64,000 bases of DNA from Rebecca billardiae RCC1528 (lineage: Eukaryota > Protista > Haptophyta): positions 2,418,001-2,482,000 of the forward strand of contig OZ251223.1 of assembly GCA_965240325.2 (NCBI GenBank), read 5' to 3'. The translations under genes were made by a program, and so were the position numbers. Below, piece after piece: positions 12,825 to 20,260 of this stretch; the first letter of the stretch is position 1; each line of letters starts with the position of its first letter. The notes under the pieces are model-generated. The model did no database searches. It was not told the DNA's origin and saw only the letters and a program-made list of their open reading frames with translations.

Positions 12825-14420
12825 ATGGACGCGCGGCAGGTGCAAGGCACAGCGACGCTGCAGCTGGGGCAGTTCGCAACCGAGTACACAATCACCGCAC
12901 TCGCGAGCGAGCTCGTGCCTCTCATCTCGGCCGCGATCGCCGACGAGCTCAAGCGGCACATCACCGCCTCCCTGCAGCCGATCCGCGACGACATCCGCGC
13001 GCTCGCGATGCAGGCGCGCCCAGCGGCGGGTGGTGCAGGCGGCGAGGTGGGGGCCGGCGGTGACGGGCGATCCATCGTGTTCATCTGCGACCCCACCGTC
13101 AGCGCACCCACGTACGAGTCCGTCGGCCCCGCGCCCACGCCAGCCGCGCGGCAGGTGCCGGAGGACCAAGCGCCACAGCCCCGTTGGGCCACGCCGGCGC
13201 CCACGGAGCCCGAGCGGGGCCCTGAGAGTGCGGCGGCGGCGGAGCCCCCGAGCGCGCACCGTGCGACGCTCTCGGCCGCACCGCCGGCCCCAGCTTCCCA
13301 GCGCATCCCGCCGCCACCGGCGACCGACGCGCGACCCGCGTCCTCGGCAGACCGGGCGGCGACGGACGCTGCGGCATCTCCTCGGATGCCGAGTGATCGG
13401 CCCATCCCAGTGATGCGCGTTCCTACTCCTCGCGAGCGGCCTCTGCCCGGGCCGCCGCGCGCGGCAGATCTCGGCCCCGAGGTGCAGCCGCTGGGCGAGC
13501 TCGCTACCTGCTCGGTGCGGCCGCGCGCGCGCGTGCGCGTGCGCCGATGCCGCGATGCCCTCTCGTAGGCATCCCAGGCCCATTGCGCCGCCCTCACCGC
13601 CGCCACATCTCCCGTCCACCTGGGCGCGGCGCGGCCGCAGGTGTGCGGCCGGCAGTTCGCGGCGGCGCGGCTCGCGCGGCACGAGGCCATCTGCGCCAAG
13701 TCGCACGCCAAGAAGAAGCCCGCCGACAGCGAGGAGCGGGGTGCCTCGCTCTCAGGCGCGAAGGACGTCGAGAACGAACGCGCCACGCCCTCGCCGCCGC
13801 CTGCCAGGCCACGGGTGCGCACTACGGGATGCGCGTGCGCACGCCCGGGCGTTCTGGGTGGACGCCCGTGCGTGGCTGCCTCTTCACATGCCGCGCGGCC
13901 GCCCTGCGCGCACCATGCCCCTCGTGACGCCGCTCCCCACCGCCGCGCGCACTCCCTTCCCTGTCGTGCGCCCCGCTCGGCCCCGCAGCCAGCCGCCAGC
14001 GCGCTGGGCGGGCCGCGGGGCGGAGATATGGAGCGCGTGCCTTGCCCGCACTGCGGCCGCAAGTTTGGCCCTGAAGCGGCCGAGCGCCACATCCCGATCT
14101 GTGAGCGCAACGCGGACAAGGCTCGCATCCGCGAGCTGACTAAGGAGGCGTCGTTCGCGCCGCCCGAGCGCCCGGGCGCGCACGGCGCAGCCCGAGGCAA
14201 GAGGCGACCCACATCGCTGGCGGGCGCGCAGCAACCGAGGCGCGCGCAGTCGGCCGGGCGACAGCGACTGTCTTCAACGACGTCGAACGTGCCAGGACAG
14301 TTCGATGCCTCGGCCTCGTCGATGGCCTCGTCGACAAGCGGCACGCACCATCACCGCATGCGCGCATCGATGGGCGGAGGAGCGTCTGCATTGCGCCCGC
14401 ACCATGCTGAGTATGAGTAA
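12825..14420 (+). CDS. C2HC zinc-finger protein (ZC2HC1-like), spliced
   Basis: GT-AG intron 13515-13640 joins TCS|VCGRQFAAARLARHEAIC. Second finger PCPHCGRKFGPEAAERHIPIC. Probable in-frame intron 13815-13988. Confidence 0.8.
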
Positions 14421-14570: not shown

Positions 14571-14793
14571 ATTATTATGGGCGGCGCGCAGATGCAGGGA
14601 TGATTAATGCTGCATGCTGTCTGCTGACGATTCATTAATATGATTATGAAGCGGCCACTACGCCGTACTCGTCGACTCGCTACTCGTGAGTCTCGTCAGT
14701 CTCGACGAGCCGGACTACGACGCGAGACTCAAGACTACGTCCTCTGCTGAGTGCTACCGTGTCCAGCTGTCGTCATCGGAGTCGTCATCATCA

Positions 14794-17142
14794 TCATTGC
14801 ACCTGCCATGAGAAGGCAGGCAGCGCACGGAAGAGCGCCGTCCGCACGAGCTCGTTGAACTCGTTGAACGCGTCGAGCCCGTCGCCGCCCCAGTAGCCGT
14901 GGATGAGCGAGTCGATCATGCGCTTGTCCTCCTCGACGGACGCGTGCGCGTCGCGCGCGTCGAAGCGCGCGAGCACCGACTCGACCACCCGACGGTCGGC
15001 CTGCAGCGCGCGCAGGAACATGGCGCGCTCGGCGCGGTCCATCGTGATGTGCAGCTCGACGTCGTCGTACAGCTGCGAGCTCGCAATCTCGAAGAGGCAC
15101 CACGCGCGCGTGAGGGCGAGCGGGCTGTGCCACGGGTCGAGCACGATCACCGTGCGCCCGATGTACGCCTGGATGTCGCCGATCGCCTTCACGTCGCTCG
15201 CGACGTCCGACTGGCGCAGGCTGAGCACGTCGAGCCAGACGTACACGTCCGAGAGGCGCACCGAGTGCATCTCGGCGTGGAGGTCGATGGCGTCGAGCAG
15301 CTTGGCCCACGCGCACTGCTGCGCGTGGCTGACAAAGATGGTCGCCTCCGCGACGGCGGGGGAGCCATCGTCCGCGAGCGCGCCCGAATGCAGCTGCGCA
15401 AACGATGTGCCCGCCTCCGCGGTGAGCGCGCGCACGACCTTGCCCACCTCGTGCGTGCTCGTCGCCGAGGTGATGCCGTGCTCGGCGGCGAATGCGCCGA
15501 GGAAGCGGCGCGAGACGCCGAGCACGAGGGGCACCGCCTCGCCGCTGGAGGAGAGCGCGACGGGCGCGGTCCTGCGCGAGCGCGGCGGCGACGGCTGCTG
15601 CGGGGCCACCCTGGCCTCCGAACGGAACGACTGGCGCAGCGAGCGCGAGTCCTGCGCCGACAGCGGCGGCGGCAAGGTGTCCGATTGGAACGACGGGCGC
15701 ACCGAGCGCGAGTTCTCCGAGAGGCGCGGCGGCGTGGCTGGATGCGCCGAATGGCTGTCGTCCGCAGTGGCGCCGCACGCGCGCCGGACGAGCCGCCATG
15801 TCCGCCGGCGCAGCCAGTGCAGCGGCAGCTTGGGCACGCGTGTCGAGACCGGGTGCAGCGCGTAGGTCTGCACGTACCCCGTGCCGTTCAGCGCCACGAC
15901 GTACAGCAAAGTCGCGACCATCAGCACGTACGGCCAGTGGAGTGCCGGCAGCAGAAGGGCGGCGAGGAGAACTGAGGCGACGGACGCGCCAATCACCTGG
16001 CGCATCCGGCGGCGCAGCCGCATGCCGACGCCGACGGGGAGGCGCTGCGTCGATCGGCTGCCGCTGAGGCTGCGCACGAGCGCGTAGCTGGGCACCAGCA
16101 TCAGCAGCGGGCACACGAGGAGCACGCCGATGTCCCTCAGCCGCTCCGTCGTGTCGTCGTGCCACGCGTACAGGGCCGCGCCCGCGCACACGGTGGCGGC
16201 CAGCACGGCGGTCGCAAAGATGAGCGAGGGCTGGCGCATCGCGGGCCGCAGCTGCAGGCTGGCGAGGCCGCCGGTGTCGAGCGCGCTGCCGAGGTACACG
16301 AGGAAGAGCGCGCTCCCGAGCAGCCCGAGAGCCGCCTGCAGCGTGAGCAGCAGCGCGGCAGACTCCACGTCCAGCGTGCCGCGCGACCACAGCGGGTCGA
16401 CCACGCCCAGCGCCACGCGCACGAGGCCGGCGAGGATCTGCACGAGCATCATCACGTGCGCGATGTTGGCGCGGAGCCCGCCGTCCTCGCGAACGAAGGC
16501 GTACAGGTGGCAAGCGGCAAGCTCAACCAGCTCGAGCGAGTTGAGCGCGACCAGCGCCTGCCATGCGACGAGCGCGGGGGAGGAGCGCATGCGGTCCCAC
16601 CGCGTGGCCGAAGGCCGGACTCGGGCGTGCACGCGCGCGCCGGCGCGGAGGGAGGCGAGCAGGCCCTCGCCGGCGCGTTGCGTGATCTCGGCGGCCACGC
16701 CTGCGCTCGACTCCCTGCTGTCCCCGAGCACCCAGCACATCTTGCACCGGCCCGGTGTGGCGCCGAGCGCGACCGAGTCGTCCAGCCACGCGAGCCATGC
16801 GACTGCACCCTCGCGTGCGGCGCCGCGAGAGTGCATCTCGGCGCTGCACCGGCCCAGGTCGGGCTGGTCGTGCACAACAATGCGTCCGTGTAGCGACGCA
16901 TTATTGACTGCTGCGCTCGCCTCGCGCAGCGCGGGCGGGCACGCCGAATAGTCCCACGCGCTGCGCGCGGTCAGCACGAGCTGCGCGTCCACGTCAAACG
17001 CCACGGGAGCAAACGCGTACGCGCCAGCGAGCAGTCGCAGGCCGGCGAGCTCGGGCGGGGCAGTCACCACGAGGTCACCGGCGACACGGCTGACGAGCGC
17101 CGGCAGCACCACGGCCGCGCCGAGGATCCGTCGTCGCGGCAT
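14794..17142 (-). CDS. Receptor-like protein: signal peptide + PA domain + 7 TM helices + cytosolic HET/TIR-like domain
   Basis: 782-aa intronless ORF. PA motif LHGRIVV...GRCS.E.....A.EGAVA; seven hydrophobic segments at about 16580-15860; C-terminal FVSHA..WLDVLSLRQ..VLDPWHSP..LTRAWCLFE..A.AS.EED...I. Confidence 0.7.
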   Translation of the reverse strand: MPRRRILGAAVVLPALVSRVAGDLVVTAPPELAGLRLLAGAYAFAPVAFDVDAQLVLTARSAWDYSACPPALREASAAVNNASLHGRIVVHDQPDLGRCSAEMHSRGAAREGAVAWLAWLDDSVALGATPGRCKMCWVLGDSRESSAGVAAEITQRAGEGLLASLRAGARVHARVRPSATRWDRMRSSPALVAWQALVALNSLELVELAACHLYAFVREDGGLRANIAHVMMLVQILAGLVRVALGVVDPLWSRGTLDVESAALLLTLQAALGLLGSALFLVYLGSALDTGGLASLQLRPAMRQPSLIFATAVLAATVCAGAALYAWHDDTTERLRDIGVLLVCPLLMLVPSYALVRSLSGSRSTQRLPVGVGMRLRRRMRQVIGASVASVLLAALLLPALHWPYVLMVATLLYVVALNGTGYVQTYALHPVSTRVPKLPLHWLRRRTWRLVRRACGATADDSHSAHPATPPRLSENSRSVRPSFQSDTLPPPLSAQDSRSLRQSFRSEARVAPQQPSPPRSRRTAPVALSSSGEAVPLVLGVSRRFLGAFAAEHGITSATSTHEVGKVVRALTAEAGTSFAQLHSGALADDGSPAVAEATIFVSHAQQCAWAKLLDAIDLHAEMHSVRLSDVYVWLDVLSLRQSDVASDVKAIGDIQAYIGRTVIVLDPWHSPLALTRAWCLFEIASSQLYDDVELHITMDRAERAMFLRALQADRRVVESVLARFDARDAHASVEEDKRMIDSLIHGYWGGDGLDAFNEFNELVRTALFRALPAFSWQVQ

Positions 17143-17527: not shown

Positions 17528-20260
17528 ATTTGCCTCCACCATCGTCACCGGGAGAAATTCTGTACGACGCATGGGGTGGGCACTGCTCCCATCCGAAGTG
17601 AACCTCGGCAGCAAGCTGATGCAGCAGCTGTGCCCCGGTATCGGGATGCTGGCCACAAACCGGACCCACAGGGCATATACAAGACTCGCAGCAATGCCAG
17701 GGGCAGCTGCCCTCCCCTGCTTGGCACCACACGGCCTCCCTGACGCGAACGGAGAGATGCTCAGCCGGATCGAGCACTCACTGGTAAACGGTACCCAGCA
17801 CGTGTTGCTAGGTGTGCTCATGCAGCAGCCACCAAGACAGATGGTCTCCACTGCGTTCTATGCGGAGCTGTCCTCACTGCCACATAGGTCCCGCCCGGCG
17901 GTGATACTGGCAGTGAGGGATATGCTGAGGGCAGTCCTGACTGACCAGAGCTACTACAGGTACCTGGGGCACGTGCCTGCCGCCAAGCGCACTATCTGTG
18001 ATCCACCCAATCCCCGCCATCTGCCGGCACTTCCTGTACCTGGCATGCTAATGGTGGCCACTGACGGCTCATTCGATGCAGAGAACGGACAGGCTGCATG
18101 TGCCTTTTCCTTCTTCAGTGGCAACAATTACATTTACACTGCCCCTGTGCATGTGTTATTGTGTATTGCTCCAAGTTCGAGGGGCACCAGGCACCAGGCC
18201 CAGCCGAATTCATGGCCATCACCGATGCATTGGTACAGATTGACCCCACCGCCAACCTGCTGGTGTGCACTGACCTGCAGGAAATGGTAAAGGCCGCCGA
18301 AATGTGGCAAAACGACCCCTGGGACCGACGGCTGCGGCAGGGGCACCACGCGTACGCACCATACATCGCCAGGGTCATGAACCTGGTGGGCTGGCGCCGC
18401 CTGATGCATGGCAGCACCACTTCATTTGAGCATGTCAAGGCGCGCTCTGCTGACGATGCGGCCGCGCTACACCTCAGCCTCACTCACACTCAGGGGGACC
18501 AGCACTGCACCGTCAGCCAACACAGTGTGGCGGCTTTGCGCCAAGCAGGGATGAACCCCAAAACCCTGCTCAACGCCTGCAGCGATGCTGGGGCCAAGCT
18601 ATGCTGCTCTGACCCCACAACCCCCTGTGTGACTCACAAGAGAGGTGGCCACCCAAATGCGGGTTCTCATGCGCTGGTACAGCTGGCCAACGGAGAGCCA
18701 GTGGCAGGCAGAATCAAGCCCCTTGTGCATGACAGTGTGCTGTCACAAAGGGCAACGCACCTGCAAGCCACCAAGCCCAGCTGTGACTTGGTGGGTGAAT
18801 GGACTGGCGTGTGGCCAGAGGCCTCCACTGGCATCCTACGGACCTGGCAGGCCAGCACTGTGCCTGCCTACTACATACTCCACCACGGATATGAGTTCCT
18901 GCAGCCGGCTGCCCTGCGAGACCCGACGTTGTTATCTGTGCGATTCCAGTCGGGGGCTGCATTTAGCGATGCCTGCCCCCTCTGTGATCATACTCCACTG
19001 CTACATCCAGCGCCAGATACTGAACACCACCTCTTCTCCGAGTGCCCTGAGGTCGATGCCTACCGCGAGGCTGCTGCCAGAAGCATATCGCATATAATTG
19101 AGCCCTTCATGCAGGGACAGGCCGCAGCATGGAACTTGGCGCGACATGTGTGCTCTGGGGCTGCCCTCGTGGGCAGGGTGCCCAGCACACTGAAGACCAC
19201 TGTGGGGGGCAACGTGCATCTCGGCAGGAGCATGCACGTGGCCTTACTGAAGGCAGGGCTAGGCATCATGCAGGCCCGCAAGGACGTGGACTCCCAGCTG
19301 TCAAAGGCAGGGCGTCTCCTCCGACATGCCAGGGAGCTTCGGCCGCCGCCTGGGCACGACCAGGGGGGGCAGCCCCCTCCCCCACAGGCACAGGCAGGCC
19401 CAGGAGGGGCGATTGCCATGAATAATCAGTTACAGGGGCCACCTGTCATCCAGCAGCAACCCCCTGCCCAGGCTGGCCAGGGCTGGCAGGCAGGCGCGGG
19501 GCAGGCCAACCTGCACCAGCCAATAGCGCGCGGTCACCACGTGCGCCCTCAGCTACTCTTGCGGGCATGGCCCCTACAGCGTGCTCGCCCCCTCCCTATG
19601 GTGATTGCGTGGCCTCTGCAGCCTGCCACACCTCTTGTGGCATGGCCGCTCCAATATGTTACCCCACTGGCTCGCCGCGATGTGCGTCCGTCGGACAATG
19701 TGTTGACACATGGGGGCCCTGAGATTGAGGCAGATCCTGCTGCGGGCAGTCACACTGGTCACGGAGCTCACAACGGCATTACACAATCAGACACTGGACA
19801 GCAGGCCACACAGCCACCTGCTGGCTCTGCCAAGACACTGGCAGCCCCCAGGCGCAGGCTGCCTCCTCCTAGTCAAGCTCAGCAAGACAGCCCCCCGCCC
19901 AAACGACACTGCCCACCCCGCCAGGCAAATGTGCCTATCCTAACACCAACTGGCAGGCAGGCTCAGCCTGCACAGCGAAGTATGCAACCCCCTGCAAAGA
20001 GCAGCAGAAAGAGGCGCGCAAACGACTCCTCCCCAGGCGTATTAGCCATCGCCACCACTCTGCTTGCCTCCTACAGCGGCCCACGCCCTGACTTGATGCC
20101 CGATATCGCACACATGTCTGACATGACACCATCTGCCTCCATAGCAGCACGAGTGAAATACAGGCGCCTCACTGCCAGGACCAGTGGCCCAGACCCCGGC
20201 CCAGCTACTGGGCTCGCTGACAGCCCCCTCCGTCCCCTCCCCCGCGCAGGGATCGGCTAG
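17508..20260 (+). mobile_element. 5'-truncated, frameshifted non-LTR retrotransposon ORF2 remnant (RNase H + CCHC knuckle + Pro/Gln tail)
   Basis: ATDGS in one frame; PAEFMAI..AL, VCTD, FEHVKA and N...D..AK in the next frame (shift at about 18140-18190); CPLC..EHHLFSECP. GC is lower than in host genes and no RT is retained. Confidence 0.75.

Follow-up and report, generated by a model that had tools for sequence, protein, structure and literature searches.

Here, we report a gene of the haptophyte alga Rebecca billardiae RCC1528 whose predicted product is a single chain composed of a signal peptide, a protease-associated (PA) ectodomain, a seven-transmembrane (7TM) core with the fold of a G-protein-coupled receptor (GPCR), a linker, and a 245-residue tail of the TIR/HET superfamily. 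The gene lies on the minus strand of a window of 64,000 nucleotides (assembly GCA_965240325.2, contig OZ251223.1, positions 2,418,001 to 2,482,000), and all nucleotide positions given here are numbered over this whole window. Its 782-codon frame has no internal stops in the list of open reading frames, the identical 782-aa protein is present in the protein collection as P0001, and the layout that a preliminary description had read from this one frame (signal peptide, PA domain, seven helices, linker, HET/TIR-like domain) recurs at about 50 loci of the same genome. On balance, we favor a reading of the protein as a single-chain membrane sensor, in which an outer PA domain and a GPCR-fold bundle are tethered to a TIR/HET tail that acts through a glutamate, Glu685. 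The gene and its parts are located as follows.

14794-17142, minus strand: complete, single-exon coding frame, ATG to stop, 782 codons plus the stop codon (14794-14796).
17077-17142, minus strand: signal peptide, aa 1-22, MPRRRILGAAVVLPALVSRVAG, read from the sequence, with a hydropathy peak at residues 6-28 and a predicted local distance difference test score (pLDDT) of <50 at residues 1-21.
16603-17076, minus strand: PA-fold ectodomain, aa 23-180, from Foldseek, a sub-threshold Pfam PA match and the paralogue alignment.
15853-16587, minus strand: seven-helix bundle with GPCR fold, aa 186-430, from an AlphaFold2 model and structural comparison; modelled helices at aa 189-220, 227-248, 259-289, 300-326, 330-361, 370-400 and 404-428.
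15532-15852, minus strand: cytoplasmic linker, aa 431-537, a basic juxtamembrane stretch followed by a Ser/Pro/Arg-rich low-complexity tether.
15352-15531, minus strand: N-terminal helical subdomain of the C-terminal domain, aa 538-597, with the motif LGVS...TT.EV...S.AE conserved in alignments.
14797-15351, minus strand: TIR-superfamily (HET-like) core, aa 598-782, containing the next three motifs.
15322-15336, minus strand: FVSHA, strand A.
15211-15237, minus strand: WLDVLSLRQ, strand B and BB loop.
15088-15114, minus strand: LTRAWCLFE, start of helix C.
15088-15090, minus strand: codon of Glu685 (in WCLFE), candidate catalytic residue, from the invariant column and the TIR_2 alignment.

The N-terminal half (aa 1-441) was modelled with AlphaFold2 from nine paralogous halves, aligned over their full length at 32-36% identity. 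The resulting model (pLDDT 77.5, predicted template-modelling score [pTM] 0.79) consists of a disordered stretch (1-21), an alpha/beta domain (23-176), and then seven long helices. The signal peptide named in the preliminary description has a basic n-region and a hydrophobic core, and the alpha/beta domain was matched by Foldseek to the PA domain of the aminopeptidase 2ek8 (E 9e-5, 24% identity), to that of plant vacuolar sorting receptor 1 (VSR1; E 5e-4 to 4e-3, template-modelling [TM] score 0.56-0.67 by target), and to the ZNRF3 ectodomain. The PA-like domain claimed earlier thus stands as a fold, but it misses the Pfam cut-off: the PA model (PF02225) scored 13 bits on the query (E 0.12) against a threshold of 23.9 bits, and matched two of 31 receptor-type relatives, also below threshold (E 6e-4). 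Residues conserved among the paralogues include G86, S100, E102, P130-G131, G140-D141, and R143 (alignment A3). Known membrane proteins with PA domains (VSR1/RMR, ZNRF3/RNF43/RNF13) resemble the present protein in their order of parts: the signal peptide leads into an N-terminal PA ectodomain, then comes a membrane anchor, and on the cytoplasmic side stands an effector, which is a RING domain in RMR and ZNRF3. Their PA ectodomain binds peptides or protein ligands. They differ in being single-pass proteins with a RING or sorting tail, in contrast to the seven-helix bundle and TIR-like tail found here. In a protein atlas compared by language-model features over aa 1-441, the nearest clusters (0.90-0.92) come from Endomyxa and Zoopagomycota and hold unnamed eukaryotic proteins 461-607 aa long, and in one cluster 10% of the members have PA; proteins of the PA-7TM type may, from these features, exist outside algae.

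Exhaustive structural comparison of the bundle against 48,161 chains returned GPCRs or GPCR-like folds in all of the top 50 places (Z 16.3-19.1 over 211-255 aligned residues, above the tool's caution line for helical bundles), including MRGPRD, GPR6, GPR3, the mu-opioid receptor, GABA-B, Frizzled-4, and LYCHOS. The model has seven membrane helices in the GPCR arrangement with the N-terminus outside. A hydropathy scan recovered six strong membrane segments besides a hydrophobic stretch at the N-terminus; the first helix lies under the threshold and is called from the model. Lys and Arg residues number 15 in the predicted inner loops versus 2 in the outer loops, which places the PA domain outside and the C-terminal tail inside, so that both the seven helices and the orientation put forward in the preliminary description are borne out. 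The bundle differs from GPCRs and GPCR-fold "orphans" in having no Pfam 7TM sequence match, either in the query or in the 31 relatives, and in having an output domain fused in cis, which makes coupling to G proteins unnecessary; matches of the G-alpha model over the genome were weak and partial, one of them reaching the cut-off solely when summed with neighboring matches. Between bundle and tail, the linker (aa 431-537) is 44% Ser, Pro and Arg, in line with its earlier description as a Ser/Pro/Arg linker, and the corresponding paralogue linkers (80-175 aa) are unalignable, a composition and variability that would fit a flexible tether. Within it, a near-duplicate, SRSVRPSFQSD / SRSLRQSFRSE, occurs 16 residues apart (aa 477-507; 15622-15714, minus strand) and was not found in eleven other paralogue linkers; it may be a phosphorylation-type site or low-complexity drift.

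The tail was modelled from 13 aligned copies of the last 245 residues (pLDDT 90.6, pTM 0.89) and has the flavodoxin-like alpha/beta fold of the TIR superfamily, with alternating strands and helices and strands A-E. Among the 48,161 chains its best 16 matches were all TIR domains, as were the 20 best Protein Data Bank matches in Foldseek, a comparison that the preliminary description had proposed, albeit at weak E values of 0.02-0.2. The adaptor TIRs of MyD88, MAL, and TRIF matched as well as enzymatic TIRs in the structural comparison, and the best match among predicted viral structures was a TIR/WD40 protein of Tetraselmis virus 1 (E 2.7e-3). The helical subdomain at aa 538-597 (pLDDT 89-96) lies outside the TIR-matching stretch (model residues 61-245) and is family-specific.

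At the level of sequence, the tail falls outside the curated families. The query was unmatched by Pfam TIR (PF01582) and TIR_2 (PF13676) even at E 10; across 101 diverse tail relatives TIR_2 matched three (best E 0.011) and HET (PF06985, threshold 22.5 bits) matched five (best E 0.003), the commonest Pfam match, all of them sub-threshold. HET also matched one of the 31 receptor-type relatives (E 0.0088) and not the query; over the whole genome the HET model gave no matches, but its controls stayed silent too. In an anti-phage library the two best matches were ThsB TIR-like models, and HET, TIR_2, and ThsB are the only sub-threshold families that recur. Canonical TIR_2 domains are present elsewhere in the genome (18 matches, 10 over the cut-off), none of them at PA-7TM loci. 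Two of the genes involved carry a tandem TIR_2 pair inside one frame of about 890 codons (G000:C5:1949398-1950210 and G000:C13:1545244-1546164). When the tail family was aligned with eight of the genome's TIR_2 domains, hhalign at default settings gave probabilities of 25-37% with strands A-B alone aligned; relaxed settings gave 43% (pair E 2.5e-4) and one collinear alignment of 120 columns, which pairs FVSHA with strand A, the Asp of WxD with the Asp after strand B, and Glu685 with the invariant Glu of TIR_2.

Glu685, which sits in the model on the helix after the third strand, is the sole invariant column among the 101 relatives; F603, S605, H606, W636, D638, G662, P670, W671, P674, L677, R679, W681, C682, and D739 are at least 90% conserved. 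The FVSHA motif resembles the "FISHA" of bacterial TIRs, and the W-x-x-x-E that opens the helix probably corresponds to plant TIR WCLxEL and to W638/E642 of SARM1. The blocks WxDxFxxNQH and RxWxxxE are probably those of fungal HET (W.D..CI.Q, R.W..QE). With TIR domains such as SARM1, plant TNL TIRs, and bacterial ThsB/AbTir the tail shares the flavodoxin-like fold, the FVSHA strand-A motif, the Asp after strand B, and probably the Glu, invariant here, in a W-x-x-x-E that follows the third strand and opens helix C; unlike them it adds a 60-residue N-terminal helical subdomain and a C-terminal helix, carries the WxDxFxxNQH block that is absent from canonical TIRs, and fails to reach the Pfam TIR threshold. 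As in Toll-like receptors, a TIR-type domain stands at the cytoplasmic end of a membrane receptor, but the membrane part is here a seven-helix GPCR fold rather than a single helix. Fungal HET (PF06985), whose three conserved blocks map onto TIR up to helix C, seems to match the tail in block order and in the R-x-W-x-x-x-E spacing, and HET genes in fungi have likewise undergone large lineage-specific expansion, whereas HET proteins are soluble (NLR heads or stand-alone) and all members of our family that were tested scored below the HET threshold. The three motifs lie where the preliminary description had put them, and the family consensus FVSHAW / WxDxFxxNQH / LTRAWCLxE appears to follow the order and spacing of the HET blocks of PMC4986451. 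Dyrka et al. (PMC4986451) showed that HET is remotely related to TIR and that haptophytes, stramenopiles, and green algae have homologues of it. We read the tail as an unnamed, very large, HET-like branch of the TIR superfamily that lies outside both Pfam HET and Pfam TIR; the earlier TIR/HET-like label therefore holds for the TIR-type fold and the HET motif parallels, but not by the curated thresholds of either family.

The design is repeated many times in this genome (72 Mb, 41 contigs), where a profile search returned 128 exon-level matches for the tail and 59 for the PA-7TM half. The latter resolve into 57 loci, the paralogue count that the preliminary description had called for, and 48 of these have a tail downstream on the same strand. 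Six apparently "tail-less" loci were inspected: two carry a diverged tail, detected with a broader profile, and four carry none within the stretch fetched, which brings the tailed loci to at least 50 of 57. Paralogues of the gene are 33-49% identical to it, and 19 tail loci have no PA-7TM partner. The PA-7TM receptor module also seems to exist alone, judging from four paralogues of 590-740 codons with no detectable tail in the stretch fetched (G000:C22:900000-905000, C19:1026300-1031300, C19:794000-799000, and C17:178500-184000). No Pfam family of other effector domains was found at the six inspected loci, of which two were later shown to be tailed.

Beyond this genome, a profile search of 1.84 billion representatives with the tail returned 7,245 at E ≤1e-3 (representatives at 50% identity), with 4,140 at ≤1e-10 and 562 at ≤1e-30. 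Repeats of the TPR_12/TPR_10/NPHP3 type were found in 44 of the 66 best-scoring soluble relatives scanned, which agrees with the earlier statement that this domain is usually joined to TPR arrays. The tail domain also occurs in predicted-structure clusters of oomycetes, haptophytes, and chlorophytes (TM score 0.85-0.88 across its full 245 residues), and these include fusions to methyltransferase, DUF285, and HNOB modules. PA domain, bundle, and tail occur together in 20 of the 150 best representatives besides the query. One of these proteins with the full design, P0013, shares no more than 41% identity with any sequence of this genome and thus comes from another organism. Recurrence of the layout at 48 to at least 50 loci and in 20 of the 150 best representatives makes it more than a chance arrangement.

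A further copy of the tail stands on a contig that is probably from a giant virus, as judged from its gene content. P0152 (617 aa; L031:3549-5402; contig SRR24908252_29725, 14,137 bp) has seven helices without a PA domain, followed by a tail that is 33% identical to that of the query (E 3e-38); similarity in the bundle is weak and collinear. The contig is AT-rich with tightly packed intronless genes, and the neighbors of P0152 encode the second-largest subunit of RNA polymerase (Rpb2 family), a DEAD/ResIII helicase, an AAA ATPase, a RING protein, and a 998-aa nucleoside hydrolase. When the 101 tail domains were placed in a quick maximum-likelihood tree (unrooted, short search), all receptor-linked tails, the viral one included, fell into one clade of 31 rows (Shimodaira-Hasegawa-like approximate likelihood ratio test [SH-aLRT] 98). 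The other 15 rows of this clade are proteins of 242-434 aa, and no TPR-bearing protein falls inside; two of the short members begin inside helix 7 and are thus fragments. The tree points to a receptor fusion that arose once.

We propose that the parts work together in the following manner. The signal peptide would be cleaved, leaving the PA domain facing the outside or the lumen, with the cytoplasmic tail held by a flexible tether of about 100 residues. A ligand binding at the PA domain or the bundle may then change receptor conformation or clustering, and clustering would bring tails together, as TIR domains require, allowing a pocket around Glu685 to cleave NAD(P)+ or a related nucleotide, or to make a nucleotide signal. 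Although ligand, clustering, enzymatic output, and immune role are steps that we infer, the presence of some 50 diverged copies together with a probable giant-virus copy suggests a task in recognizing biotic cues (from viruses, microbes, or non-self) and not in housekeeping. In the haptophyte Gephyrocapsa huxleyi, TIR genes with multi-helix N-termini are switched on early in virus infection (PMC12489294, 2025). These genes are similar in that their products place an inner TIR with a conserved Glu behind an extracellular region or several membrane helices. They respond early to a giant virus and were proposed to be receptors, but they were defined by HHsuite matches to Pfam TIR families, with no PA domain or GPCR fold described (PMC12489294). 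Taken together, the expansion, the viral copy, and the comparison with Gephyrocapsa huxleyi suggest a part in immunity or in dealing with non-self.

Several points weigh against this reading of an enzymatic sensor. The alignments behind the models are shallow (13 and nine sequences), the profile-profile probabilities are low (25-43%), and none of the three domains (PA, 7TM, tail) passes a Pfam threshold. Homodimer prediction of the tail, counted among these points, scored 0.00, a value that speaks neither for nor against self-association. PA domains of VSR/RMR serve cargo sorting, which makes an endomembrane role possible. Many animal TIR domains are adaptors and not enzymes, and activity of HET is not established (PMC10197012).

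These points are taken up by several rival explanations. The main one holds that the tail is a non-enzymatic adaptor that, once activated, makes homotypic contacts and thereby draws in other proteins carrying this domain, in the way MyD88 is recruited by Toll-like receptors; candidate partners would be the receptor-free copies in this genome, and soluble copies in the wider family usually carry TPR arrays. The fit of the MyD88, MAL, and TRIF structures, as good as that of enzymatic TIRs, would be expected of such an adaptor, yet the lone Glu is invariant across 101 members that have diverged widely and is preceded, four positions earlier, by a conserved Trp, a pattern to be expected of a catalytic site sooner than of a contact surface, and we regard the adaptor as rather unlikely. 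A tail that is an enzyme of the TIR/nucleoside 2-deoxyribosyltransferase fold group with a substrate other than NAD+ (hydrolyzing nucleosides or nucleotides, or processing nucleic acids) appears improbable to us, given that the 16 best structural matches are all TIR proper and that the sub-threshold signals lead to HET, TIR_2, and ThsB with none to deoxyribosyltransferases.

The remaining alternatives concern the whole protein rather than its output. The nearest structures to the PA domain after the aminopeptidase are VSR1 and then the ZNRF3 ectodomain, which would suit a role in endomembrane sorting or quality control, with lumenal cargo bound by the PA domain, as in plant VSR/RMR. Sorting receptors are, however, single-pass and few, whereas here a GPCR-fold bundle and a TIR-like tail occur in about 50 diverged copies and the viral copy lacks the PA domain altogether, leaving this alternative very doubtful. 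It is harder still to credit that the long frame joins two genes, one for PA-7TM and a separate one for the tail, across a spacer kept open by chance. The G+C content of the region is 60-73%, and with some 70% G+C the same stretch does hold spurious frames 300-590 codons long, so that openness alone proves little here; moreover, the receptor clade holds proteins of 242-434 aa starting near the tail. Against this, about 50 loci preserve the strand, the order, and the open frame even though their linkers are too variable to align, the 20 representative proteins with all three parts come from other assemblies, and two of the short proteins, starting inside helix 7, are fragments. Two frames overlapping the gene, of 592 codons (14735-16513, minus strand) and 358 codons (14899-15975, plus strand), are rich in Arg, Ala, Pro, and Gly and look like artefacts of high G+C.

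On either side of the receptor gene, nothing suggests a functional cluster. A C2HC zinc-finger gene of 259 codons (13641-14420, plus strand) with two fingers (Pfam zf-C2HC_2, E 1e-17) lies convergent downstream, 374 bases from the receptor stop codon, and a 720-codon frame upstream (18098-20260, plus strand) has a Gln/Pro-rich second half and no Pfam match. A scan for promoters and terminators, which was of bacterial type on a eukaryotic gene, was empty.

Sequence searches with the protein itself gave little. Pfam and NCBIfam scans of the whole protein and its parts returned nothing significant, and the one match in a sequence search of the Protein Data Bank was weak and fell on the PA region of aminopeptidase 2ek8 (E 1.8). 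A word-index protein search returned only the protein itself and one TPR-linked relative for the full sequence, and the protein alone for the PA-7TM alignment, blanks that mean little given the length window and low-complexity words. Full-text literature searches for GPCR-TIR and 7TM-TIR fusions found no description of such a fusion, a search joining the PA domain with 7TM receptors found none among the papers listed, and no curated family for the PA-7TM-tail design was found. The preliminary description had called the protein a candidate new receptor class, and this needs narrowing: its components are of known kinds, and multi-helix TIR genes are reported from another haptophyte, with no description of this design (PMC12489294, 2025), but the combination, and with it the unnamed tail family, is undescribed.

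As a more tentative extension of the sensor reading, we consider it possible that these proteins form an undescribed class of protist surface immune receptors, in which a GPCR-fold bundle topped by a variable PA ectodomain is wired in cis to a nucleotide-cleaving HET/TIR effector, bypassing G proteins, with about 50 copies serving recognition of virus, microbe, or non-self; a copy without the PA domain may have been taken over by a giant virus to serve as decoy or counter-defence. Innate immunity in bacteria, plants, and animals alike makes use of TIR-type domains, and to our knowledge these have so far been found on single-pass receptors, such as Toll-like receptors, or in soluble sensors. 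A GPCR-fold receptor with a TIR-type domain in cis, if true, would constitute a third wiring and a seven-helix output independent of G proteins. The tail family, with its 7,245 representatives, sits between fungal HET and TIR, and its activity would bear on the function of HET. Expanded roughly 50-fold in an algal lineage that forms blooms, and with a copy on a probable giant-virus contig, the family provides a concrete candidate for immune recognition in marine algae, a process that is poorly known.

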